DNA of 64,000 nt from Andalucia godoyi And28 (taxonomy: Eukaryota > Protista > Jakobida): the NCBI GenBank assembly GCA_009859145.1, contig VRVR01000028.1, positions 98,438 through 162,437 of the forward strand, in the 5' to 3' direction. Both the position numbers and the translations under genes were made by a program. A model generated the notes under the pieces. It was given only the letters and a program-made list of their open reading frames with translations, did not search any database and was not told where the DNA came from. Each line of letters begins with the position of its first letter. Position 1 is the stretch's first letter. Positions 21,523 through 61,049 of this stretch are shown one piece after another.

Positions 21523-22134
21523 TCAGCAGCAACCTTTCTTCTTCTTGTTTTGACCTTCGTTGACGTCGATAGTATCCGGTACGTAAATATCCTCATCCAC
21601 CTCTTGCTTCAAAGCATTTCTCGCAACAACTTGGAATGCTTGTTCGACGTTGATCGCCTCCTTCGCAGAAGTCTCAAAATACGGAATGTTACCCTTTGAT
21701 TGGCACCATGCAAGAGCTTTCTTGTGCGGGACAACACGGTTCGATTCTACATCAATCTTGTTTCCAATGACAATGAACGGGAAGTTTTCCGGGTCCCTGG
21801 GTCCAGCCTGGATCAGGAATTCTTCGCGCCAGGATTCAAGGTTGTCGAAGGACTTCGCCGCAGTAACGTCGTAAACGAGAATGCACGCATCAGCACCTCG
21901 GTAGAATGCAACTCCCAAACTCTGGAAGCGCTCTTGACCGGCAGTATCCCAAATCTGCATCGTCACAAGTCTGTCGTCCACCATCACTTCCTTCGTCAAG
22001 AAGTCAGCACCAATGGTTGCCTTGTATTGGTTGGAGAACTTCTTGTTCACGAACTGGTTCATCAACGAAGTCTTACCGACCCCTGAATCTCCCAAAATAA
22101 TTACCTTCAACAGAACCTTTTTGCGGGACGCCAT
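21523..22134 (-). CDS. RAB7: Rab7 GTPase
   Basis: [55 protein letters not shown]-terminal GCC; 203 aa. Confidence 0.97.
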
Positions 22135-22452
22135 ATGTGATGCAAAAAATGAGTGCGAAGATGCGAAGCAAGCAGGAAAACAGAAAGCAGAAGAGGAAAA
22201 GAACGCAGAAGAATCAATGTTTTTTACCAGTCGGAGGAAATGGATGACGATTTCCCCCTCCTTTCTCTCCCCAATCCTCGGTGGCCATAACCCAAACAGA
22301 AGAGGCTGACAACTGACATCCTCTGACACTCGTTTTCGGGAAAAGCCTCTTTCTTGTTTTTGTTGTTGGTGCGTTTCCTCGGTTGTAGTTGTTTGGGTAA
22401 TCATCAATTAGGCGGGGGCTCGTCAGTTTCGTCTCCAGCAGGTTTGTCTTTC

Positions 22453-24473: not shown

Positions 24474-25300
24474 TCACAAAACATTTGCCTCGGAAGAAAT
24501 GTAGACAATCTCATTTTCGTCGTTCAGGAAAGCAACGACTTCTGCATCTGGAACCGCTCCCTTTGGTACTTCTTCGCATACCGAAAACAAGCCACCGATT
24601 GCGACAATTTCTGGAGAAAATCGAGCACAAGAAACGCACAAGTGCCGAGCAGCGTGTGCCGAATCTGCATGCACTCCTGCAATGGCTCTCCCCGCAAGTT
24701 TTCCGAGCACATGGATGCTCCCGTCTGCGATGACTTCTGCTCCTGGATGGACGTTTCCAATGACGATCAAGTCTCGACCTTGTGCATACAGCATCTGTCC
24801 GGATCTAACATGACCCGTGTGAACCATTGGCGGACTGGTCAGCCGAACGGAAGATCGGCTGCCGTGGCTGTGCTGGTCTTCCCTGGATCCGGCAGCCGCT
24901 GCAGATCCGACTCCGGTGGCTTGGACATCGATTGGAATGACGCCAAGAGAGCGCATGGCTTCAAACAAGGCATGCCTTTCAATCTGAGGCGCATTCACCA
25001 AAGAAGTTCCATCGACGACCATTGGGGAGCCGCGGAAGAAAGAAGCCTTGTTGGTCAGCGATGAAACGACAGAAGAAAGAGTGCATGACGACGTCAGGCG
25101 CAGCGTCGGAAGTATGTACGTCTTTGCAATCACATTCATTGTTCCGCTGCCCACTGCCAACTGTTCGCTTGTGGAGTTTACTTTCGGCGCAATGACTTTG
25201 ACTGCCACCTCGACTCCCGAATCTGAAATGATATTGCTGTTGTGTGGACTGTGGAGGACTCTCCCGAAAGGTTTCCACAACGCAAAGAAAGGGGGCGCAT
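24474..25300 (-). CDS. minC: Septum site-determining protein MinC, probably mitochondrial
   Basis: VRSGQMLYAQGRDLIVIGNVHPGAEVIADGSIHVLGKLAGRAIAG is the MinC C-terminal signature; N-terminal extension present. The ATG at 25300 is one base out of frame, so the start is unresolved. Confidence 0.88.
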
Positions 25301-47017: not shown

Positions 47018-50000
47018 CTAGGAAAAACGGGCCACCTTGGAAGCTGGACCCGACACTGCCGAGTCCTGTTCATCGAGAGGCCGCTTGCGATCTGCAATCC
47101 GATCCTCGGGTGTTTCGGCAGGTTTGGGTGTCTTAACGGTGCTCGCTGGATCAGGATCAGGATCTGCAAAGTCAAGATCGACAAATCCAGTCGCCTCGTC
47201 TTCGTCGTTGGCGTCACCGAGCAGAAATTCAATCATTTCGCGCTTTCCACTGGATTCCTCTCGTGTCTCCACTTGCTGTGCCTTGCCAGCGTCGTATACC
47301 GCTGCTTGAACCATGCGTTTCTGCCTGGCACGTAGCATGACCCGCTGTTCAATGGTTCCGCGAGCAACAAGTCTGTACACAGTAACCTGTTTCGTCTGGC
47401 CAATACGGTGCGCACGATCCGTCGCCTGCTCATCGCTTGTTGGATTCCAATCGTGATCAAAGAATATCACAGTGTCGGCCGCAGTAAGAGTGATACCTAG
47501 GCCTCCAGCGCGTGTGGAAAGCATAAACAAGAAGATGTCGTCTCGAGTCTGGAAATCATGCACACGATCTCGACGCTCCGAAACCGCAGTGGAGCCGTCC
47601 ATGCGAAGGAAGACATAGCCTCTTGCGTGAAAATAGTCGTCCAAGATATCCATCATGCGAGTCATTTGGCAAAAGACAAGAGCCCGGTGACCTTCGCGCG
47701 CAAGTCGAAGCAACAATCGATCAATCATAATCATCTTACCAGAGTAAAAGATCAGCTTTCGCAGCGACGGAAATCGAATCAGATGCGATCGACGATTCAG
47801 CACTGCGGTTGCAACTCGACAGCCCAGCGCGACTTCAGGCCATAGTGATTCCACTGCAGTGATGCGATCCTTGTGAGAGAATGCAGCATCCCGGTAATTC
47901 ACTCGGAATGTGCCACCATATGGAATCAGCGAAGACGTCAACAGCGACAGCATGAATGGATGCTGCTCCAACCAACACGTCGATTGGACAAGAAATCGCC
48001 GATCCGAAACGATCATCCGAGCCGGATACGCTTGCACTTTCGGAGTGCAAAGATGAGTCAGAATGTCATCGCAGAAAGAAAGCGCCTCCGCCCGCGCTCG
48101 CTTTCGTACGCCAATTGTGGAGGGTCTCGTGGTATGCTCCTCAATCCATGCATCCGCAACGAACAGCAAGTCTTCATACATTGCACGAGTTTCGCGTGTG
48201 AATGAAATATCGGTCGCCTTGGAGCGAGACAGTCTCAATGCTGGAAGCTCATCTCTTCCGTTATCCGAACGCGTAGACATCATCTTGGCGTTCTTGCGAG
48301 CGTAGCTGACAAAGGATAAAATCTGCAATCGGGGATCCGAAATCTGAAGACAGCAGTCTTCAATGCAAACTCTGTGACGAACATAGGCGGGCGGCATACG
48401 ATAGGTTCCAAATGCACTTTCTGCAGGCGGCGTCGACAGACGACGAGCACGAAAGAAATCGTACGGAGAAATGGAAAATAGACTGTCAAAAGGGGTGAAC
48501 ATCGTACTAAATTGCAGGACAACAGTTCGCGGGACCAGCAACTCAATCTTATCGTCACTCTTTCCCATGAACAATGGAGATCGTACTGGCTCGTGCTCGA
48601 ACAGTGAGGGGTGGTTGCACACCTTGCGTAACTGCATTACCATATTCATCAATTCGGAGTCCTTTTGTGCAGCAACAGTAACCTTTGACTGCATCAAAAT
48701 CCTCTTCTTCAAGTGCTCGTACAGCGCAACCTGCATCGGGGTCAGTTGGCACGAAACTTGCAATTCCACCTTCGGCGCCATCTCAGACTCGACATCGCGC
48801 TTAATGCGGCGAAGCATAAACGGCTTCAAAATTGCCTGCAATTTTTCAACCTGGTCTGTTCTGATTTTCGATGTTTTCACGGCTTGGGCTTCAATGTCTT
48901 TTGCAAACCACTGGGCGAACTCATCGTGCGATTCGAACAGCGTTGGCATTATGAAATGCAACAAGGCCCACAGCTCAGCCATGTTGTTTTGAATGGGAGT
49001 GCCCGTAAGCAGCAAGCGATTTCGAGAGTGGAACCGCAGAAGGGTCTGCCAACGTTGTGAGGCAGAGGATTTGATGGCATGCGCTTCGTCGAGCACAAGA
49101 TACTGCCAACCAAGTTTTCCGAAGTACTTGTCATCATCAACAACAATTTTGTACGATGTGATGACAACATGAAAAGGAGAATTACGTTGGTGAAGACGCT
49201 CGTCATTCCAGGACCTTCGAAGAATCTTCCGATCGCGAGCAGGTCCCCAGTACGGCAGAGTCCTAAGAGATGGACAGAATCGCGCGAGCTCCTGTTGCCA
49301 GTTGTGAAGCGTCGCCGTTGGAGCGATGATCAGGAACGGACCCCAGAGGCCTTTGACGGTTGCCAAATGATTCAGGAAACAGATCGTCTGAATTGTTTTG
49401 CCCAGGCCCATTTCATCTGCAAGGATACCATTAATGCCTTGGTCATACAAAGAAACAAGCCACTGAACTCCTTTTCGTTGATACGGCTTCAGCTCGCCTT
49501 TGAAATCCCCTAGACTGATTGGGGCCATATCCGGTTCTTCCGGTTCAATGACAGCATGTTTGGAGTCGTGCGGGTCCAGCGGCTTCTCAGCATACCCATC
49601 AAACTCTTCCAAATGTCCTATGTGATTCTCAATGATGCGCGCAGCTTCCATCTGTGCCTCGGCTTCATCGGTTCCTTCCAGTTGCACAACACCACTAACC
49701 TGGCTTCCAGCAGAGGCTCCAACTTTCTTTGCCATGAAATGTGAAAAAATCTCTGTCTGTCTAAGCAAGAAATTGAGCTTCTTTTGCTGTCTCGTCGCTT
49801 CGCGTTCTTCTTCTTCACGTCGCATTCGGTCTGTGGTTTCCTTGTCCACCTTTCTCTGGGCCTCTGCAGCAGACTTTTCATTCCGCTTCCACGCAAACAC
49901 AAGATCCCTGGCGACTCTTTTGGCGCGCGTAACTGCATCCTTTTGGGCCCTCCTAACATTTGTTGCTCTCTTTGACTGCTCTTTTCGAACATTGTGAGCG

Positions 50001-51517
50001 GTCCGTTTGGCGGCGGCCAACATATTCGAATACCGCTGAAAATTCGACTTGTACCAGTTCGGAATCTCAACGCTTGCAATGAGTTTCCACGACGCGGAGA
50101 CGCGCGCCGCAACGGACTCGAGCTGTCGAGCCCTGAAACTGCGGATGTCGTCTCTCATTGCCTGGGTGCTTCTCTTTGCTTCCGCTTCCATATCAGCAAT
50201 GGTCAACACGCTGTTCGGAGTACTGTTCCACAGATTCGGCAAGGCTTCGACGCCCAGCTTCGGCCCACTACGCGACAGAGGTTGCAGATGGGAGCGCACA
50301 GCCTGTTGCACCGAATGGGATTGCAGCAGCGAAAATTCCAGAGCAAACGAGTCCCAGTGATACGCAGCAGGCAACTTCCAGTCCACCGATCCCAACTGAT
50401 CCCACAGTCCAGATGAAACTGTGGTTGGCCACGCAGAGGGCAGTGCGACGGGCACTGTGTCGGATCCAAAATAAAGCTGCATCCTCGTTTTCCGGCTTGC
50501 ACCAAACATTTTTTGCCGGCCTGCATTCAGTCTTTTCAGTCGTCTGATCTTGTCCACTGCCGTCACAAGATCCTTGAATTCGAACTTCAAACTAGGCTTC
50601 TTGTCTGCCTTTTCAGGCTGATTAGGGTGTGACTGCTGCCTCTCGTGCTGCTGCAGCACAATTGCCGCAGTTCGATCCACCATCCAATTGTAATACGATT
50701 CCAAGTCCGCGTAGTAGCCTTCATTTGTTTTCGCAGCAATAAAACCCAACCAGTTTCGATACTCTTCTTCGTCGCTGTCACGCGAAGCTGGCTTTTCCTT
50801 CTGTTCACTCCACAGCTGAGCAACGAGTGCATTTCCATCCGAACCGAGCTGAGGAACACTTGTTGAAACCGGTTTCCAATCGTCCTTCCGCACAGCCAGC
50901 AAGATGCCATTCTTTGAGAACCCCGGTCCGTACCCCGCATTTCGCTTCCCGCCGCCATCCATTCCCTCATCGGATGCTGTCTTTGGCGCTGACCCCGCAG
51001 CACTGCTGCCGCCTGCGCTCGCACCTTTCCTCTCCCTGCTTTTAGAAGGCGCGTTCGACGCCGAGCCTCTCAAATGCCCAGCAGAAGGCCCCCCTGCCTG
51101 ATGACCGTTACTTGAACCAGCGCTGCTGTTCTTGGCACCCGCATAAAATGCGTTCGCCGCAATATTCCTTGATTTCGGCACGGGTCCGAGGTGGTCTGAA
51201 GCATCATCACCACCACCACCGCCACCACCACCGCCACCGCCACCGCCACCGCCGCTTCTGCCATTTACGTGATTTGCAGCCGTGAGACTATGCGACAGCG
51301 AAGACTGAGAGTTGGAGAGCAAAGAACGGGCAGTCGGCAGCGTGCGAGAACGACTACTTTTTCTCGAAGACGTCTGCACCCCTCCACCACCAGCAGCAAG
51401 AGTAGGAGCAGGAGGAGTAACCACCGAAGAAGACGAAGAAGAAGACGAAGAAGAAGACGAAGAAGAAGAAGAAGAAGAAGGAAGGGCAGTCACCTCCGTT
51501 TGATTCGTTGTCGACAT
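47018..51517 (-). CDS. INO80: INO80 chromatin-remodelling ATPase
   Basis: DBINO domain (RAKRVARD..WKRNEK..EEEEREATRQQKKLNFLLRQTEIFSHF), GILADEMGLGKT, DEAH, split ATPase, QATDRAHRIGQ; 1499 aa from ATG 51517. Confidence 0.95.
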   Translation of the reverse strand: MSTTNQTEVTALPSSSSSSSSSSSSSSSSSSVVTPPAPTLAAGGGGVQTSSRKSSRSRTLPTARSLLSNSQSSLSHSLTAANHVNGRSGGGGGGGGGGGGGGGDDASDHLGPVPKSRNIAANAFYAGAKNSSAGSSNGHQAGGPSAGHLRGSASNAPSKSRERKGASAGGSSAAGSAPKTASDEGMDGGGKRNAGYGPGFSKNGILLAVRKDDWKPVSTSVPQLGSDGNALVAQLWSEQKEKPASRDSDEEEYRNWLGFIAAKTNEGYYADLESYYNWMVDRTAAIVLQQHERQQSHPNQPEKADKKPSLKFEFKDLVTAVDKIRRLKRLNAGRQKMFGASRKTRMQLYFGSDTVPVALPSAWPTTVSSGLWDQLGSVDWKLPAAYHWDSFALEFSLLQSHSVQQAVRSHLQPLSRSGPKLGVEALPNLWNSTPNSVLTIADMEAEAKRSTQAMRDDIRSFRARQLESVAARVSASWKLIASVEIPNWYKSNFQRYSNMLAAAKRTAHNVRKEQSKRATNVRRAQKDAVTRAKRVARDLVFAWKRNEKSAAEAQRKVDKETTDRMRREEEEREATRQQKKLNFLLRQTEIFSHFMAKKVGASAGSQVSGVVQLEGTDEAEAQMEAARIIENHIGHLEEFDGYAEKPLDPHDSKHAVIEPEEPDMAPISLGDFKGELKPYQRKGVQWLVSLYDQGINGILADEMGLGKTIQTICFLNHLATVKGLWGPFLIIAPTATLHNWQQELARFCPSLRTLPYWGPARDRKILRRSWNDERLHQRNSPFHVVITSYKIVVDDDKYFGKLGWQYLVLDEAHAIKSSASQRWQTLLRFHSRNRLLLTGTPIQNNMAELWALLHFIMPTLFESHDEFAQWFAKDIEAQAVKTSKIRTDQVEKLQAILKPFMLRRIKRDVESEMAPKVELQVSCQLTPMQVALYEHLKKRILMQSKVTVAAQKDSELMNMVMQLRKVCNHPSLFEHEPVRSPLFMGKSDDKIELLVPRTVVLQFSTMFTPFDSLFSISPYDFFRARRLSTPPAESAFGTYRMPPAYVRHRVCIEDCCLQISDPRLQILSFVSYARKNAKMMSTRSDNGRDELPALRLSRSKATDISFTRETRAMYEDLLFVADAWIEEHTTRPSTIGVRKRARAEALSFCDDILTHLCTPKVQAYPARMIVSDRRFLVQSTCWLEQHPFMLSLLTSSLIPYGGTFRVNYRDAAFSHKDRITAVESLWPEVALGCRVATAVLNRRSHLIRFPSLRKLIFYSGKMIMIDRLLLRLAREGHRALVFCQMTRMMDILDDYFHARGYVFLRMDGSTAVSERRDRVHDFQTRDDIFLFMLSTRAGGLGITLTAADTVIFFDHDWNPTSDEQATDRAHRIGQTKQVTVYRLVARGTIEQRVMLRARQKRMVQAAVYDAGKAQQVETREESSGKREMIEFLLGDANDEDEATGFVDLDFADPDPDPASTVKTPKPAETPEDRIADRKRPLDEQDSAVSGPASKVARFS

Positions 51518-51558
51518 GGACTCCTTTTTGCCGTCCTGTTTGTTGCCTGTGCGACGAC

Positions 51559-51560
<2 letters not shown>

Positions 51561-51592
<32 letters not shown>

Positions 51593-51611
51593 GAAGAAGA
51601 AGAAGAAGAAG
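51561..51611. repeat. Compound (AAC)10(AAG)7 microsatellite upstream of the INO80 start
   Basis: Direct reading. Confidence 0.9.
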
Positions 51612-52080
51612 AAAAATGAGAATCAACCAGGAGCAAAAGAGGGAACACACGAAAGAAGAAAGAGAGAAAGAAAAGGGGGAAAACAAAAGAAAAGAAAAAG
51701 AAAAGAGATGGAGCGAGTGTTAGTTTGAGAGAGAAGATGTGAATAAGGATCGGAAAAAAAAAAGGAATCGATGAAAAAAACCAATAATAATAAATAAAAT
51801 AAATAAAATAATGACCATTAAGAACTTTACGAGGTAATAATAATAATAATAATAATCTCCATTGGTGGGGGTTTGTTTTGTAATGGGGCAAAGGGAACCC
51901 AAAAGGAATCAAAAGACCAAGAGCAGGAGAAAAAACAGGAGACACAATCGAGTGCGCTGCAGATTTTTCAAATTTTAAATTAAAAAATATATAATTAAAA
52001 GATAATAAGAATAAGAAAACTGGGCTTCTTGACCCAAAAAGGCAGCACGGAAAAAAAGCCGCCATCAAAAGAAAAGCCAA

Positions 52081-52111
<31 letters not shown>

Positions 52112-52534
52112 AGATTACAGAGGGCGGGGAAAAATGGATCGGAGAAAAAAAAATAAAAATCAAAATAAAGAATTTCCCGCTCTCGAACTCGCGACCTTTT
52201 TGCAGAGGGGGAGAGACAGAGTTGAGGCCTTGAGGGTAGATATGAAAAATAAAAAGAGGCGCGCATTTCTGTTTCCCAACGATTCCTTTCTTTCTCTCCT
52301 TTCTTTCTTATTTATTAATTAATTTAATATTGATTTTAAAACATTGATTTTTCTCTCTCTCCCTCCTGGTAATTGTGTTTTTTCTTTCGCTTTTGGATAC
52401 TCGTACGTACTGTCGCGGTGTCTACTGCCCGTTCGTGCATTCGTTGGCATTCATTCGCATCAACCGCGCATCCGCTGCATTAACCGCGACAGACAAGAAG
52501 GAACAGCTGGACACGCGGGACAGGGGAAAAAAAG

Positions 52535-53110
52535 ATGAGTGATCTTGAAAGCGAATCTTTGCTGGTTCCAAAGACAACAGTGGCTGCGATTTTGAAAGAC
52601 TCGTTGCCTGAGCATATGCGCTGCGGAGGAGACACAAAGGATCTGTTGACGTTGTTATGCACACAGTTTATCCAGCAGATTGCATCCGAGGCAAATGAAC
52701 TTGCGGATAACGAAGGCAAAAAGACAATAATGCCGTCACATGTGCTGGGGGCTCTGGAATCCATGGGGTTTTCTGGACCCGACTGGGATGAAGAAATCCG
52801 GAAAGCTGGAGATGTGTCGAAGCAAGCGCATTCTATCAAGGCAAAGAACTCGGCAAAGTCGAAATGGAAGAATCAGACCATGACGCAGGAGGAACTGCTT
52901 GCGGAACAAGAAAGACTGCATGCTCGAGCATTGGCGTTCCAGAATCTGGAACAGCATCTTGGACATGGTCATGCAGCTCTCGAGATCGACTCCGTGGCCT
53001 CCTCAAGCACGACGGCTGCGGGCAAGGAGTCTGCCCGTATTGGTGGTGGTGGTGATGGTAGTGCCGACGCGGATGCAGATGGTGGTGGAATCAATTTTGA
53101 TGAAGACTGA
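52535..53110 (+). CDS. DR1: Negative cofactor 2 beta subunit (histone fold)
   Basis: VPKTTVAAILKDSLP..CTQFIQQIASEANE..KKTIMPSHVLGALESMGF and TQEELLAEQERLHARA match Dr1/Ncb2. Confidence 0.92.
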   Translation: MSDLESESLLVPKTTVAAILKDSLPEHMRCGGDTKDLLTLLCTQFIQQIASEANELADNEGKKTIMPSHVLGALESMGFSGPDWDEEIRKAGDVSKQAHSIKAKNSAKSKWKNQTMTQEELLAEQERLHARALAFQNLEQHLGHGHAALEIDSVASSSTTAAGKESARIGGGGDGSADADADGGGINFDED

Positions 53111-53207: not shown

Positions 53208-56200
53208 TTATTTTGACATGGGTGCCATCGTCGACGAACCAGGCATGGCAGGCATTGATATCCCCCGCCTAAGTTGCTCGAGCTGTATCTGTGTGGAGCG
53301 AAGATCGGAGATATCTCGGCACACTCCAACAACATAGTATTCCGTCTCGTCTTCGCCGAACACGATTCCAAATCTGCTTTTCTTTGTCATGAAGTACTTG
53401 TCTCCGACCTTGATGTTGCTTTCCACCACCCTGCCAGTTCGCAACACAACCTGTTCTTCTGCATCGCGGTTCAAGGCATCCAGCAAAATCGGATCTGCAT
53501 TCAGCAAAGACTGGAAGGCCTCATTGTACACAACGAGGAGATGGTTCGAGTCCTTGACGAATATCGGGTCCGGCATGTTGTCCAAAATGGACTCGAGCAG
53601 TTCGCGAGCTGCCATAGCATCTTCATGCTGCTCCTGAAGCTTCTTGTGTGCTGCTTTGAGCCGCCGTTTGACTTCCAGCAAATACTTCTTTTCATCGTGG
53701 TGGAAAGCTTCGACGATCATAGCGAGGACCAGATCAAGCACAAACAAGTCAACAATGACAAGGAACAGGATGAAATAGATCCAACCATAGGGGTATTCCT
53801 GGAGTACGCTGTTGGAGATTTCGTAGTATTTGTGACTGAACATGACAATAGAAAGCGAGAAGCAAGTCGTCGAAAACGTCCCAAAATAGTGAGGGGCATA
53901 CCTGGAGAATGCAAACGTGCCAATAATAGCAAAGATGAAAAACACAAGGAATGCCGACAAGAGTATCCAATAAATCTCGGCAATGGTGTTGCGAAGAAAA
54001 ATAAATAACCGGTTCGTTCGGACGAACAATCCAAATACGCGAAACACGCGCACAGAGAGGAAAAACCCCAGAAATGCATATGCAACCTTGCTGTCTCGGG
54101 CGTCAGTACCATATCCAAAAATTGGAAAAATAACAAATTCCAGGTACGTGTATGCGGACCCCGTGAAGACAAAAACATCAAAGACATTCCAAGCATGACG
54201 AAAGAACGACAGCGCTGCTTGCTTCTTTGAAAACAGAGTCGACTTTGTCGCAGTGCGAAAATGAAAAAAGAAATTCAGCAAAATCAAGGAAAATTCGTGG
54301 CACAACAACAGAAACATAACCACTGCAACGAAAATAGGCGGCTGTGCAGCGACCGTTGTCTCTGCCTGGTGGATCCCCTCCGCCTCATACAATGGTGATT
54401 GGAGCCACAGCACAAGCATGAGAAGCTGGAGAGCAAGTGCGAAGCAATGAAGGGAGCGTGCAATCTCCTTCTGGCTCCGTTGAATCCTGCGACGGACACC
54501 AAAACGGCTCCGACGATAAAATTCAGCAGACCCAGGCTCTGCATTTGATTCCGCAAAAGTGCGCGGCGCGTTATTGTACGCAAACAACGTGCTGTCCTTT
54601 TGCGGCGCATTGAATTCTGGCTGAACTCCTCGATCACCCACTGCGTCGCTGGGATGATGATGTTCAGCGCGGCCACTCTTGTGACGCTTTTGGCTTCCGT
54701 CCATTTCCCAATCTCCAGCAAACGAACTTGCATGTTTGCCAGAAGTGGGCGATTCCGGCTTACTGTTGTGGCTGAAATCAAATGACCAGGACTGGCCATT
54801 GTGCGGTGGGTGTCCGACGTCGTTATCATTAACAATATCAGTGGCGTCATCAGCATCATCACGATTCTTTAAACGATCACGATACTTTTCTTCATGGTCC
54901 TCATCCTGTCTACCGCGATTCGTAGCATGCGGCTTCACAGCCCGCTTGCGCATGTCACTTGTCCTTCCTGTGACGTACTTCTTGGTAATTTCATGAAACG
55001 ACAAAGAAGACGAGGGAACGATGCCGGCGCTGCTTGTACCGCCAGGAATGAGAGGGCGTGTGGACGAAACTTCCGACGGACCTAGCACCTCTGGAGATTC
55101 GTAGGCAGAAACAGAAGGAGCAGTAGGAGCCGCTGAGGCAGATTCACCTGGCAATTCAATGGGCGGCGGTCGCACGCTGACGGATGACGAAGATGCGGAA
55201 TGGCCAGAAGTCAACGCCGAGCCAGACGACTTGGATCCGGAGACGCTTCGATCCACATTTCTAGTAGAGCGGTCAGTTTCACCATGAAGACGATGATGCA
55301 GCTCCTGGTGGTCCACATCAACCCGGGCACCGTCATCAGCAACTCCAATCGATTTGCCTATACCGACTTGTTCGCCCACAGAGCTTCGCGCATGGGCGGT
55401 TCCCCCAGAGACTCCTCTCGCCTCTGCTGCAGATGCTTCAAGTTGCTGTTGTTGATGCAGTTGCAGCAAGTGTTGTTGCAGGATCGACATGCTTCTTGAC
55501 TTCAGTGGCTCTCGACTTGGTCGGATCGGAAAAGCCTTTCTCTTTGCAGATACGGAGACTCTGCGCTCCGATTCTGCAAGGGGTGGCGAGATATGGTAAT
55601 CCAGAACGCGCAGATCTTCCACAGTCGACGCATTCCCAGCCGCACCAGCCTCTCCCGCCTCTACGACACCGACACCGGCACCGGCACTCGTACTTGGGTC
55701 AGGACTCAGCTGCAGGGAAGCGCCAACCGGAAACTGCGACGCACCCAAGCTTGTGATTCTTCTCAGTACACTCGCTGGTTGAGTTGTGACTCCAGAAAAC
55801 GACAATGCATTGTGGCTACTGGAAGCACTGTCGTGCAAACCGAGCGTAGGTGCATGCTGTGGAGCAAAAGAGCTCTTGTTTGAAACAAACGAAGACGAGC
55901 GCCGTCTGTTCAAATTCTTGCCATCGCTCGCGTTTCCGTCATTTCCACCCGACTTGTAATGCGGATTATGAAGGAAGTGGGGGTTGAGACGAGGGTTGAG
56001 ATGGAGAGGAGAAGGAGGCGGAGAACGGCTGTCAGCAAAACGACTGTCTAAAACGACTTCACTTTCGTCGTAACCATCCGAATCGTCAAGATGACCGGGA
56101 GGGAGACGCTCGGAATCATCCGAGTCATCCTGGGCATTTCGTTTGGATTCGCTGCCGCCTTTGCCCTTCTTTCGACTTTCAGAAAGATGAAGGAAATCGT

Positions 56201-56390
56201 CTCGATTCCACATCAAGGATTGTCGATGAATGGAGAACGTTGCGTCGAGAGCATCGTCAATCGAAGAGTCTTCTTCAGTTTCAGTTTCCGCTTCCCCCTC
56301 TGTCTTGGAGCCATACTTCTTGTTTTGAACCGATTCTCTACGGCTGCCGCGCGCAGACGAACTGCTTGACGACAGAGACTCTGGATCCAT
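53208..56390 (-). CDS. Single-domain 6TM channel (bacterial Nav-like Ion_trans) fused to a C-terminal PAS domain
   Basis: From MDPESL (ATG 56390), 1060 aa. AWNVFDVFV (S3), VRVFRVF (S4), FGTF..CFSLSIVM (pore helix), YPYGWIYFILF..LVLAMIVEAF (S6), coiled coil, LLESILDNMPDPIFVKD..NEAF..GVCRDIS (PAS). Confidence 0.88.
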   Translation of the reverse strand: MDPESLSSSSSSARGSRRESVQNKKYGSKTEGEAETETEEDSSIDDALDATFSIHRQSLMWNRDDFLHLSESRKKGKGGSESKRNAQDDSDDSERLPPGHLDDSDGYDESEVVLDSRFADSRSPPPSPLHLNPRLNPHFLHNPHYKSGGNDGNASDGKNLNRRRSSSFVSNKSSFAPQHAPTLGLHDSASSSHNALSFSGVTTQPASVLRRITSLGASQFPVGASLQLSPDPSTSAGAGVGVVEAGEAGAAGNASTVEDLRVLDYHISPPLAESERRVSVSAKRKAFPIRPSREPLKSRSMSILQQHLLQLHQQQQLEASAAEARGVSGGTAHARSSVGEQVGIGKSIGVADDGARVDVDHQELHHRLHGETDRSTRNVDRSVSGSKSSGSALTSGHSASSSSVSVRPPPIELPGESASAAPTAPSVSAYESPEVLGPSEVSSTRPLIPGGTSSAGIVPSSSLSFHEITKKYVTGRTSDMRKRAVKPHATNRGRQDEDHEEKYRDRLKNRDDADDATDIVNDNDVGHPPHNGQSWSFDFSHNSKPESPTSGKHASSFAGDWEMDGSQKRHKSGRAEHHHPSDAVGDRGVQPEFNAPQKDSTLFAYNNAPRTFAESNAEPGSAEFYRRSRFGVRRRIQRSQKEIARSLHCFALALQLLMLVLWLQSPLYEAEGIHQAETTVAAQPPIFVAVVMFLLLCHEFSLILLNFFFHFRTATKSTLFSKKQAALSFFRHAWNVFDVFVFTGSAYTYLEFVIFPIFGYGTDARDSKVAYAFLGFFLSVRVFRVFGLFVRTNRLFIFLRNTIAEIYWILLSAFLVFFIFAIIGTFAFSRYAPHYFGTFSTTCFSLSIVMFSHKYYEISNSVLQEYPYGWIYFILFLVIVDLFVLDLVLAMIVEAFHHDEKKYLLEVKRRLKAAHKKLQEQHEDAMAARELLESILDNMPDPIFVKDSNHLLVVYNEAFQSLLNADPILLDALNRDAEEQVVLRTGRVVESNIKVGDKYFMTKKSRFGIVFGEDETEYYVVGVCRDISDLRSTQIQLEQLRRGISMPAMPGSSTMAPMSK

Positions 56391-57288: not shown

Positions 57289-57866
57289 CACTGTCTTTCG
57301 ACACATGATTGCGTGCAACATGCGGGCTGACAGGTCCGACATCCAAAGGCTTTTTGGGATGCGAACTCCGGGAGAAATTGCAGGTTTGAAGAGGAGTTTG
57401 TTTTGTGACAGCGCAAGCGGGAAACGTGACTTCCGTCGGTGGCTTGTCCATCAGACATCCACGAGAGATTGTCCAAGAAAGGCTATCGTGATAGCGGCGC
57501 ATCCAACCTTGTTGCCTCAACCCAGCAAGTTTTTTCTGACGACTTCTCTGGAATTTTGGGTTGGGGCCTTTTCCTGGGCCTCGTGCGCGAAACTTTTCCA
57601 TTTAAGCCACCAAAGGCCAAAATCCAACACCACCACTATCCGTTTCCCTCCCTTCTTTCTTTTGATTTCCTTCCTCTTTTCCTTCTCTCCTTTCTTCTTT
57701 CAAATACTGTTCTCCTTGTCCTTCTTCATTCTTTATTCATTCATTCTTCTTCTTCTTCTTTTCTGTTTCTTGTTGTCTGCGGAACATTGTACATACAAGG
57801 GTGGTGAAAAAACAAAACAAACAACAACCAACAAACCAGTGGGACAGGATATTGGAAAGGGAAATA

Positions 57867-60800
57867 ATGTCGTATGAAGGGTTCAATGTCAAGAGCATGG
57901 GATACTACGCCCCTTACTCCGGACCGTCGTTTCTGAACTCTATATTTGACTCGAATAATTCGTCATCTTCTTCGTCCTTGTCGTCCTCGTCTGCCTTGGA
58001 TCCAAGCAACAGCAGCAGCAGTAGTAATAGTAATAATAGTAGCAGTAGCAGTGATGGTAGCAGCAGTAGCAGTAGTAGTGGTATTAATTGCAGTATCACT
58101 GGTATTAGTACTGGTAGCAGTATTGGCAGCGGAAATGTGAATATCATTAGTAGTAATAGTAGCAGTAATATTGGGAGCAACACCAACTTTATTAGTAGTA
58201 GCAGTAGCAGTACTCGTAGCAGTACTCGTAGTAGCAGCGCAAACAGCAGTACAGATAGCTCTCCGCTGCTTGAAGCCCTCCGGAACCAGCCTTCTTCCGC
58301 AACTGGCAATGTTTCGAGTTCAGAACTTGGAGCTGGAGCTGGAGTTGGAGTTGGAGCTGCGGAGGTATACGATGTGCGATATCCTTATGGGTCCGAAATC
58401 TCGCAGCAGTTTGTGTCGTCCTTCTATCAGCGTCAACATAGCCGGAATGCTTCTGCTCCACAGTACCTACCTGCAGGAATGGATGATCAGTCGCATGGTT
58501 ACCAGCATTCCCAGCATTCCCAGCATTCCCAGCATCCCCAGCATCCCCATCATGGCCAGCGAAAACTGGTTCCAAATGCCAGCTATGAATATGCGCATTA
58601 TCCACCGACACAGTATTCTCAATATGCGCAGCAGCAGCAGCAGTTCGTTGTTCCCAATCGATCCGCAAACTCCCTTTCGGCTCCGAGTGCGAATTCTGGA
58701 TATTACCGAAACTCGGTCGATGGTTCCGATGCGTACGCAATGCAGTTTCACTCCATGCATGAGCCACAGCCAGTACAGAATTCTCTCAGACTCCGTGGAA
58801 TGCAGCAGCAGCAGCAGCAGCAGTATGGCAGTGCGGGAAACGCTCGTTTGAATACTGGAAACGGAGGCCTACTGGCACAACAACCTATGATGCAACAATA
58901 TTCTGGGGGACAAGTGATAGCACAGCATTCTTTCCATCAGCATCAACAACAGCAGCCCGTTTCTCTGGGAGTCCATTCAGGTTCGCAGCTGTCGCATCAG
59001 CAGATGGGTATGCATCTCGGTCCTCAACAACAGCGTCATCCGAATCAACACCAAGGACATCATCAAGGCCAGCCGCACCTTCAGCCGAGCCATCGTCATC
59101 AAGGTCGTCATCATGGACACCAGCATCACCAGGGTCATGGTGGGGTGCACGTGCAGCAAGCACCGCCGCAGCCACAGCCACAGCCACAGCCACAACCACA
59201 GTCACAGTCACAGTCACAGTCACAGTCACAGTCACAGTCACAGTCACAGTCACAGTCACAGTCACAGCAGTTTAAACCGGAACGTCACATCTTTTTCAAC
59301 AAGGACTTTTCAGGCTTGCTGATCAAGAATGCAAAGTTGATTGGACAAAAGTGCTCTGCGTCCGTTTGGGTTGATGCAGAAAAGGGAATCGTGACGATTC
59401 GCGGAGTAGGGGCACCGGCCGAACGTGCAGAAATAGCAGTCCGCAACTTACTTGCGCAAGCTGCGTTTCCTAGACGAGTGTTTTTCCATTATGTGTACGA
59501 CCATATTCCCGAGCACGCAATTGACGAGTCGAGTATGCTCGTTGAATTTGTTCCTGCCGGCACTTCAGGGACGGATGACTACGACTCGCTTTCTGGAAAG
59601 GTTGATTGTTTCTTGCGTTTTGCGAACCGCAATGTCTCGTTTTCAGCAGATCCGTTGCTGGACGATCGCCTTGTGGAAGAGCATGTCAATCGACGCGTCA
59701 GTGAATGTATGCAGGCGATCCAGCCTTATGCACAAGCGTTGTTCAGTGAGGGTGGAGTTGTTGGAGCGGGTGGCGCCGGAGCAAACGGTTCCGGAGGTGG
59801 CGGAATGTTTGATGACGACATCCGCACACCACTGGCAGATGTTGTGAACGTGCAGATTCGCATTGGATATCTCCGGTATCGTGTATCTCAAAACATGGTT
59901 GGGCGAACGTACACGCTGAAGGAAGTCCGCGAGCTGTTGGAACGAGACCGCCAAATTGACATGCACATTGACTACAAGTTGCGTGACAACAAGTTCACGC
60001 AGTTGCATCATTTGCTCAATACATTGCCGGATGTTCCTTCTGGCAACAATTCTGGAATCGAGGCGTCGTTCCCATTCGATACGTCAACGCTGAGTGTTCT
60101 TGCTGGACCGACTGAGCGAGATGGTCCGTCGAACTCCGATCACAGCGGGTACGATGAACCACTGCCGTCAATGCCTTATCAGAAAGGCGGTAGCCGCGGT
60201 GGTGGATCTTCCTCTGCTTCGGTTTCTGCTCCAATGCTGGAACGCCAGGGTCCTTCGATCTTGTCACACGAAAGAAAGCTTCGTGCGGGTCGGCGGTATG
60301 CCATCGAACGTGGACAGTTCGTTAAACTCTTCTTGCACCATCGGTACCGAGCCCCGCACAAGCAATGTCACATCAACTTTTCTCTTGAGGAAGATTCAAA
60401 TACCCGAGCAGTAACTCGGTGGGAGCCCATTTCGTCGGTTCCTGGTGAAGATGTTGCGCGCACATTGTTTCAGGTCTTCCATGTTCCAATAGGCGATGCT
60501 CTTGGATTGTGTGTCGAAGTCAAGGGGAAGACCCCTGGTCAGATTCACGCAGCGCAGTCATCCACAGGTCCGGTGGTTCCTTCGGGGAAGAAGGAGAGTC
60601 CACCGCCATCATCCTCGTCGTCGTCCGCGTCTGCGAACGATGCGGGTTCGGCGTTGTCTTCGAATTCCATGTTTGAACAGGCGCTGCACAGCTTCCGCTG
60701 CGCAGTCCGCTTCTCTCGAGATGGCTTCCCCGTGGCATCGCCAGACGCAGTTTTTGAAGTTGGGGCCCAGCGATCCAAGGACACGGATGCTTTTGTGAAC

Positions 60801-61049
60801 CCGACAACTGGCGTTACATTCTCGCTTTCCAAGATTCGCCAGTTTCGAGGAGGTGTGGAGGAGCGCGGACGGTGCGAAGTTGCTGGACATGCTGCATTCT
60901 TCAAAGAAGCTTGTCGATGCTGGGATGAGAACGGTGTCAAGGTCAAGGCTGAGCACTTGACAATGAGTCTGTTGATGGACTGTGTGGACAAGTGTCTTCG
61001 TGAATCGTATTCTCTTCTTGTCCGATCTGGCGATCTTCCATCGATGTAA
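57867..61049 (+). CDS. Large low-complexity protein with a KH-like domain
   Basis: 1060 aa from MSYEGF; Ser/Asn/Gln/His tracts; [47 protein letters not shown] resembles a degenerate KH fold. Confidence 0.7.

Follow-up and report, generated by a model that had tools for sequence, protein, structure and literature searches.

A BacNav-like single-domain channel with a histidine-containing filter and a C-terminal PAS domain, encoded in a eukaryotic genome

Introduction

For all Nav and Cav channels, the structural point of reference is the single-domain Nav type, of which, to our knowledge, every natural member that has been studied selects cations by means of an acidic ring. The bacterial members (BacNav: NaChBac, NavAb, NavAe1 and NavMs) consist of one six-transmembrane (6TM) subunit, and the neck and coiled-coil bundle that continues from S6 tunes their gating. 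Here we analyse a gene in a 64,000-nucleotide stretch of Andalucia godoyi And28 contig VRVR01000028.1 (positions 98,438 to 162,437 of the forward strand; the whole stretch is hereafter called the window). It encodes a channel of this type in which a His occupies the position of the acidic filter residue and a PAS domain follows S6.

Several described systems bear comparison with this arrangement. In KCNH channels (EAG, ERG and ELK), a PAS domain modulates the gating of a 6TM channel; there the PAS domain is N-terminal, a CNBHD is C-terminal, the pore is of the K+ type (GYG) and the channels are not domain-swapped. In CNG and HCN channels, a cytoplasmic sensor placed straight after S6 controls the gate, and in CNG channels S4 is present with voltage in a secondary role. 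In aureochromes, a bZIP effector lies N-terminal to the PAS/LOV sensor, and the signal leaves the sensor through its N-cap helix. Closest in setting are the EukCats, single-domain BacNav-like channels of eukaryotes with a coiled coil after S6 (A in diatoms; B in haptophytes, cryptophytes and pelagophytes; C in dinoflagellates). At filter position 0, all described EukCats have Glu or Asp, their S4 is rich in Arg, and no PAS domain is mentioned for them (PMC6509283, PMC11085791, bioRxiv 10.1101/2020.04.29.068528); they have been reported solely from algae with plastids derived from red algae (PMC6509283, bioRxiv 10.1101/2020.04.29.068528). The overall picture towards which we lean for the window protein, with a little better than even confidence, is that of a conducting, PAS-gated channel that is not a Na+ or Ca2+ channel.

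Results

A BacNav-type 6TM unit joined to a PAS fold

The channel gene is an uninterrupted open reading frame (ORF) of 1060 amino acids at 56390..53208 on the minus strand, with its ATG at 56390 and a TAA stop at 53210-53208. The complete coding sequence (53208..56390, minus strand) forms a single exon and matches exactly the boundaries given by a first-pass annotation of the window. The ATG-started ORF is also identical to a recorded predicted protein, P0001, whose sole source is eukprot, and an independent gene model therefore likewise has one exon; an exact-sequence look-up for the contig of this protein gave no match. In order, an N-terminus of about 640 residues leads into a single 6TM unit of the BacNav type, which a helical linker joins to a complete PAS fold. 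Pfam recognizes Ion_trans with an E-value of 3e-15 and PAS with 23.3 bits, marginally above the cut-off of 22.6. An AlphaFold2 model of residues 625-1060, computed as a monomer from 61 aligned sequences, has a predicted local distance difference test score (pLDDT) of 86 and contains six membrane helices with a pore helix, the PAS domain and a C-terminal helix. When the whole model was compared with the PDB in Foldseek, NavAb, CavAb and NaChBac were matched with a target-normalized TM-score (TMt) of up to 0.77, and the C-terminal part of the model matched NifL and WalK.

Sequence comparison gives the same assignment. The top PDB match is the NavAe1 pore (4lto, E-value 1.2e-16), followed by dozens of NavAb and CavAb entries, such that the NavAe1 and NavAb matches span E-values from 1e-16 to 1e-10. 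The protein thus shares with BacNav channels the single 6TM subunit, a similar pore sequence (NavAe1, 1e-16), the same fold (TMt up to 0.77), an S4-S5 linker of equal length and a long cytoplasmic helix after S6 that resembles the neck and coiled coil. Unlike BacNav channels, it has a PAS domain fused after that helix and a disordered N-terminus of about 640 residues, and it is encoded on a eukaryotic nuclear contig. The proposal in the first-pass annotation of one BacNav-like 6TM unit is borne out by the Ion_trans assignment and the NavAe1 and NavAb matches, and the neighbours of the gene place it in a eukaryote.

The N-terminal region (residues 1-640; 54471..56390, minus strand) is of low complexity, probably disordered and without a Pfam domain. 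It is rich in Ser, Ala, Gly, Asp, Arg and Pro, with Ser alone at 17%. Its own frame contains no stop codon, compared with 10-43 in the other five frames, and the region is therefore coding. A disordered stretch ahead of the channel had already been noticed; its length had been put at about 590 residues, which is too short. One basic motif, RRVSVSAKRKAFPIRPSREPLKS (residues 269-306; 55473-55586, minus strand), matches residues 75-112 of a full-length relative, P0151 (blastp E-value 0.002), and could be a phosphorylation or docking site. Outside this motif the N-terminus cannot be aligned.

The filter carries His in place of the acidic residue

The pore module, from S5 through the pore helix and filter to S6, spans residues 801-897 (53700..53990, minus strand). 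Within it, the equivalent of the selectivity filter reads F851-S852-H853-K854-Y855 (FSHKY; 53826..53840, minus strand). In the HMMER alignment to 4lto, 'ivmfshky-yeis' is paired with 'qvmtleswsmgia', and the channel segment extends as '...slsivmfshky-yeisnsvlqeypygwiyf'. MAFFT alignments with 8 and then with 57 BacNav-like sequences returned the same filter register. Relative to NavAb, F851 corresponds to T175, S852 to L176, H853 to E177, K854 to S178 and Y855 to W179. Unlike BacNav TLESW, the filter therefore has His for Glu and Tyr for Trp, and the combination of an acidic filter residue with Trp (T-x-E/D-x-W) is absent, H853 and Y855 standing in those columns. The replacement of Glu and Ser by His and Lys had been read from the sequence earlier, and HMMER, MAFFT and the translation of 53826-53840 (minus strand) agree on it. 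Among 100 aligned pore domains, a His or any other basic residue in the Glu/Asp column is found solely in the family's own four sequences. The family filters are FSHKY in two members and FSHTL in one; F-S-H is invariant, and the Lys is replaced by Thr in P0003, a relative described below.

Changes are also seen in S6. Unlike BacNav channels, in which an S6 Asn (NavAb N211) is nearly invariant, all three family members have Asp in this column (D886). A second acidic residue, D881, whose column we take, from an offset derived here, to be that of NavAb T206, is Asp in two of the three members and Tyr in the third.

If, as we presume, four subunits assemble as they do in related channels, the filter would present a ring of four His, together with four Lys, and such a ring cannot supply the high-field-strength carboxylate cation site of Nav and Cav channels. 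Classical Na+/Ca2+ selectivity is therefore not expected. One consequence could be that the basic ring inverts or abolishes the preference for cations, giving an anion-permeable or non-selective channel gated by PAS and voltage. H853 and K854 on four subunits would indeed surround the outer mouth with as many as eight positive charges. The Lys, however, is not conserved, being Thr in P0003; the acidic S6 residues D881 and D886 lie on the cation-favouring side; and the pore-helix dipoles of P-loop channels generally favour cations. Because we also know of no natural anion-selective member of the P-loop superfamily, we regard such a pore as quite improbable.

A reduced S4 in the voltage-sensor module

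The voltage-sensor-like module (S1-S4, residues 646-794; 54009..54455, minus strand) retains an acidic residue in S2, namely E699, for which the relatives have Asp and Glu. It also keeps the S3 motif WNVFD, whose D738 we take to be NavAb D80. S4 and the start of the S4-S5 linker (residues 768-794; 54009..54089, minus strand) have the sequence KVAYAFLGFFLSVRVFRVFGLFVRTNR. Aligned by HMMER and MAFFT, G775 and L778 occupy the positions of R1 and R2, and R781 and R784 those of R3 and R4. The HMMER register pairs query position 206 (residue 770) with residue 112 of the 3rvy chain, which we take to be NavAb G94 on the assumption of an 18-residue N-terminal tag. In the 61-sequence alignment, the nearly invariant Arg columns coincide with L778 and R781. 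Instead of about four Arg at every third position, just R781 and R784 are left, and S4 thus differs from that of BacNav channels in keeping only R3 and R4. The two-Arg S4 described in the first-pass annotation is confirmed, R1 and R2 being the charges lost, and the same reduction is found in both relatives: the family has Gly and Leu in place of R1 and R2, keeps Arg at R3 and has Arg or Lys at R4. An additional feature, missed in the first pass, is the RTNR motif after S4 (R791 and R794), which opens the S4-S5 linker; it reads RTNR or RSNR across the family, with both Arg invariant.

These data place the protein relative to BacNav channels and EukCats. As in EukCats, a BacNav-like single-domain channel is encoded by a eukaryote, here between genes for INO80 and NC2beta; an acidic residue at filter position 0 and an Arg-rich S4 are both missing. 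Judged by its sequence, the protein is homologous to BacNav channels yet lies outside BacNav and EukCats in the functional sense, since these are two of their defining features.

A continuous helix connects S6 with the PAS domain

In the AlphaFold2 model, S6 runs on as one helix from residue 867 to residue 938 (model residues 243-314) and leads directly into the PAS domain. The part beyond S6, a heptad-patterned linker that ends in the PAS N-cap, comprises residues 898-938 (53577..53699, minus strand). The first-pass annotation had placed a coiled coil and then a bacterial-style PAS domain after S6. The PAS domain is confirmed; as to the coiled coil, the monomer model contains a helix (residues 867-938) with a heptad-like pattern, which we compare with the coiled-coil and four-helix-bundle feature of BacNav channels.

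The end of S6 and the subsequent helix form the best conserved stretch of the protein, with zero indels up to the first PAS strand: VLDLVLAMIVEA(F/V)H..E..(Y/F)L..VKR.LKAAH..L.E.HEDA.AARE.LE.IL...(P/A)DPI(F/Y)VKD. A constant length between sensor and effector is what would be expected where helical register transmits the signal. Three His are invariant among the three members, namely His897 at the end of S6 (53692-53702) and, inside the linker helix, His915 (53638-53648) and His922 (53617-53627; all minus strand). These residues might be pH or metal sensors. An axial 'histidine ladder' of His915 and His922 was considered and dropped, because the heptad assignment puts both on position e and not on the core positions a and d.

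The PAS domain resembles repeat units of bacterial sensor kinases

The PAS core (residues 939-1027; 53310..53576, minus strand) starts with MPDPIFVKD and is built from five beta strands and three short helices. It is followed by a C-terminal helix (about residues 1028-1044) and a short tail (53211..53309, minus strand). A model of the PAS region alone has a pLDDT of 93.7, with strands at model residues 34-37, 43-46, 80-86, 89-102 and 106-117, and in the whole model the domain likewise shows two plus three strands and three short helices. Foldseek returned 23 PDB PAS matches for the PAS-only model at E-values of at most 1e-3, with WalK on top and including NifL, PpSB1-LOV, BvgS, Rv1364c, SrrB and Aer2. 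The marginal Pfam score is thus backed by structure (pLDDT of 93.7 and the Foldseek PAS matches), and the PAS fold is certain as far as structure prediction can establish it.

The nearest PAS sequences are repeat units of bacterial multi-PAS sensor histidine kinases (for example, P0004, P0010 and P0036), with the consensus 'R.(F/L)L..ILD..P.PIFVKD..HR.V..N.AF ... W...K ... VG...DIT..K'. Similarity extends over the N-cap helix and first strands ('LL..ILD.(M/I)PDPIFVKD...N.AF'), the 'TKK' strand and the final 'VG..RDI(S/T)' strand, and in both settings the domain is flanked by signalling helices. Relative to the kinase repeats, the channel PAS domain is missing about 13 residues from the helices that would ordinarily build the ligand pocket, and the hairpin that links its last two strands is longer; in addition, the His of 'HR' is not conserved among the channel PAS domains. 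The channel PAS domain is joined to a pore rather than to a kinase, and its effector lies N-terminal of it.

As to what the domain might sense, the channel protein sequence contains no LOV flavin-adduct Cys motif. The sole Cys of the PAS domain, C1024, belongs to the last strand, and P0003 has Ser in its place. Light gating, one of the modes that had been suggested for this protein, is therefore unlikely. In a weak PDB sequence alignment, the proximal haem His of FixL aligns to Glu, which makes FixL-type haem sensing unlikely too. That FixL match served solely for the haem-His check; repeat-protein ('Cake') matches from the same PDB search were rejected as spurious. The cytoplasmic PAS domain of WalK is said to bind zinc, which we treat as a lead only.

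A small family under purifying selection

An exhaustive HMMER search with residues 625-1060 against 1.84 billion 50%-identity representative proteins gave 1010 matches, only three of them below 1e-30. The only matches in this collection that cover channel and PAS domain together are the window protein, the cluster of P0002 and P0003. P0002 is a 258-residue fragment, 58% identical to the query, and its cluster includes the full-length P0151 (616 residues) from a Joint Genome Institute (JGI) metagenome. P0003 (701 residues, 40% identical) comes from the Logan assembly of SRR15116022. The three full family proteins are 40-50% identical overall. The next-ranked matches are bacterial multi-PAS histidine kinases with 5-10 repeats each, an H-box and a G-box, which align to the PAS part only; then come BacNav-like channels of about 270 residues, which align to the channel part only. 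A profile search of a collection of 5.8 billion sequences returned P0003 and P0002 only. A pattern scan of JGI metagenome contigs gave no further relatives, although the scan also missed the known relative's own contig (L002), which that collection evidently lacks, and a scan of 185,579 prokaryote genomes found no member with family-specific patterns that would miss distant BacNav-PAS fusions with other linkers. In the literature, searches that paired PAS with BacNav or with Ion_trans yielded nothing relevant. The architecture, which the first-pass annotation did not recognize, is thus confined to three clusters in the 1.84 billion representatives and is absent from the EukCat and BacNav literature searched.

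Fusions of other kinds were seen among the BacNav-like metagenome and transcriptome matches. In P0062, P0084, P0103 and P0048/P0059/P0122, the fused module is an EF-hand pair, a Castor/Pollux-type domain, a TatD domain or, giving a two-domain channel, a second Ion_trans repeat. C-terminal modularity is therefore a known habit of the BacNav-like group, and what is new here is the PAS fusion and the His filter.

Among the three genes, the proportion of synonymous differences (pS) is about 0.75 and hence saturated. The proportion of nonsynonymous differences (pN) is 0.27-0.36 in the pore, 0.34-0.43 in linker and PAS domain, 0.46-0.52 in the voltage-sensor module and 0.57-0.69 in the N-terminus. 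Saturated pS together with low pN in pore and PAS domain points to long-term purifying selection on both. The F-S-H triad, the RTNR motif, D886 and the S6-PAS stretch are kept across all three members. Since the architecture and the unusual residues recur on two independent contigs of other organisms, the pattern is not a product of chance. By these substitution patterns, we are dealing with a functional gene family and not with a decayed or chimeric ORF.

An artefact would have to take the form of a bacterial contaminant, a mis-assembly, a read-through of separate channel and PAS genes, or a decaying pseudogene. In favour of such an origin, the best sequence matches of both domains are bacterial and the Pfam PAS score is marginal. 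Nevertheless, the gene sits amid eukaryotic genes within a 64-kb contig; the fused ORF is preserved unbroken on each of three independent contigs of differing guanine-cytosine (GC) content (about 0.49 in the window, 0.49 in L002 and 0.60 in L001); the junction of channel and PAS domain is the best conserved and indel-free region; and 1060 codons run without a stop under evident purifying selection. We consider an artefact barely credible.

The same conservation bears on whether the pore conducts. A non-conducting sensor, which the first-pass annotation had entertained, would be a tetrameric scaffold whose dead pore holds four voltage-sensor-like and four PAS modules for signalling to partners. 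Such a role would account for the absence from the filter of Glu and Trp, the defining residues of BacNav conduction, and for the loss of R1 and R2 from S4, and the long disordered N-terminus with its conserved basic motif could recruit partners. A dead pore would, however, be expected to drift, whereas conservation is among the highest in F-S-H, the pore helix and S6, in a family whose synonymous sites are saturated, and the pore-lining face of S6 keeps polar or acidic residues (D886 in 3/3 members and D881 in 2/3). We therefore judge a scaffold of this kind to be unlikely, and less likely than a conducting pore.

Genomic setting

The window is eukaryotic in content, compact and poor in introns. 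The channel gene is flanked on one side by the gene of an INO80 ATPase (47018-51592, minus strand) and on the other by an ORF of 1082 residues (57801-61049, plus strand), in which Pfam detects no domain. Judging by INO80, the host has no close sequenced relative: the best named matches reach at most about 60% identity over the ATPase lobes and are spread across fungi (Mucoromycota), animals, plants, Rhizaria (Spongospora) and Heterolobosea (Willaertia), and the 120 best matches include no diatom, haptophyte or oomycete. Convergent with the channel gene lies an NC2beta/Dr1-type histone-fold gene (52535-53110, plus strand), with about 100 bp between the two stop codons. On contig L001, an NC2beta gene is likewise convergent and downstream of the channel relative, which constitutes partial synteny with window positions 52535-53110. 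This NC2beta/CBFD_NFYB homologue (L001 4605-5442, minus strand) is split across two frames, that is, by an intron or a frameshift.

Elsewhere, the window encodes an organellar RF1, an EML-like WD40 protein, a Rab GTPase, an ArfGAP, a DnaJ protein and a MinC homologue; an Rfam search of the window gave no matches. The Ras/Rab-family GTPase (21523-22407, minus strand) has an N-terminal extension of about 100 residues ahead of its G domain. The C-terminal domain of MinC, a bacterial septum-site protein, is found in a nuclear ORF of 268 residues (24474-25280, minus strand; Pfam E-value 2.4e-23), which suggests a lineage whose organelles still divide with a bacterial-type Min system and may help to place that lineage. 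Homopolymeric and dinucleotide-derived tracts of considerable length are frequent across 47018-51592 (minus strand), 57801-61049 (plus strand) and 51300-52300. They appear as poly-Ser, poly-Gly and poly-Leu in the INO80 N-terminus and as poly-Gln, His-rich and (SQ)n runs in the 1082-residue ORF, and tracts of the same sort also occur in intergenic DNA (51300-52300).

Discussion

The window protein joins a BacNav-type pore, in which a conserved His stands at the site of the acidic filter residue, to a PAS domain through an uninterrupted, length-conserved helix. Its relationship to the other sensor-bearing systems is one of function at most. Unlike KCNH channels, it has its PAS domain at the C-terminus, no GYG filter and no Pfam match to a cyclic nucleotide-binding domain, and we know of no sequence relationship to the KCNH PAS domain or pore that would be detectable beyond the superfamily level. 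CNG and HCN channels, in which the sensor likewise follows S6, and aureochromes, in which the effector likewise precedes the sensor, offer a functional analogy only, given that domains and pores differ and the sensor is not homologous.

How could such a protein be gated? In the mechanism that we propose, the four S6 extensions of a tetramer would form a neck and coiled-coil bundle as in BacNav channels, and the four PAS domains would hang beneath the pore on this four-helix extension. A change in the PAS domain, be it from ligand, redox, pH, metal or partner binding, would travel along the rigid helix to the S6 bundle crossing, where the PAS state would alter helix packing or register and thereby control the gate. 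Voltage would probably just modulate gating: as R3, R4 and the counter-charges are kept, it probably still biases the gate, and as about half of the gating charges are lost, this bias should be weak.

For the ion pathway, we can offer a guess. The titratable His ring might pass protons, or cations in a manner strongly dependent on pH or transition metals, possibly with assistance from the acidic S6 residues. That the His is invariant and the adjacent Lys is not favours a role for the imidazole ring itself. The classical precedent for proton conduction in a tetrameric channel is the His-37 tetrad of influenza A M2. Put in full, the protein would be a natural P-loop tetramer of the Nav/Cav lineage with a four-His filter, either proton-conducting or else gated or blocked by pH or transition metals, and opened by its S6-coupled PAS domain. 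We advance this more specific proposal tentatively, as a possibility rather than a probability.

Several points weigh against a PAS-gated conducting channel. The Pfam score of the PAS domain is marginal, the domain lacks about 13 residues in its pocket-forming region, and no cofactor motif was recognized in it. The PAS domain may hence serve just for assembly or interaction. A basic His/Lys ring could also give a non-conducting or anion-preferring pore. Finally, the conservation statistics are thin, with three known members only, and the channel gene model and its start codon are predicted.

A conserved natural His-ring variant would test how far the selectivity of the P-loop scaffold can shift. 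With a compact natural sensor wired to the S6 gate, the protein would also aid studies of how sensors are coupled to gates and could serve as a template for engineered ligand-gated channels. If the host is no alga with a red plastid, BacNav-like channels in eukaryotes thereby reach beyond the photosynthetic lineages of the EukCats. And if the His ring functions as we suggest, the family would add to the superfamily both a selectivity class and a gating mode that are new to it, in an orphan eukaryotic lineage.

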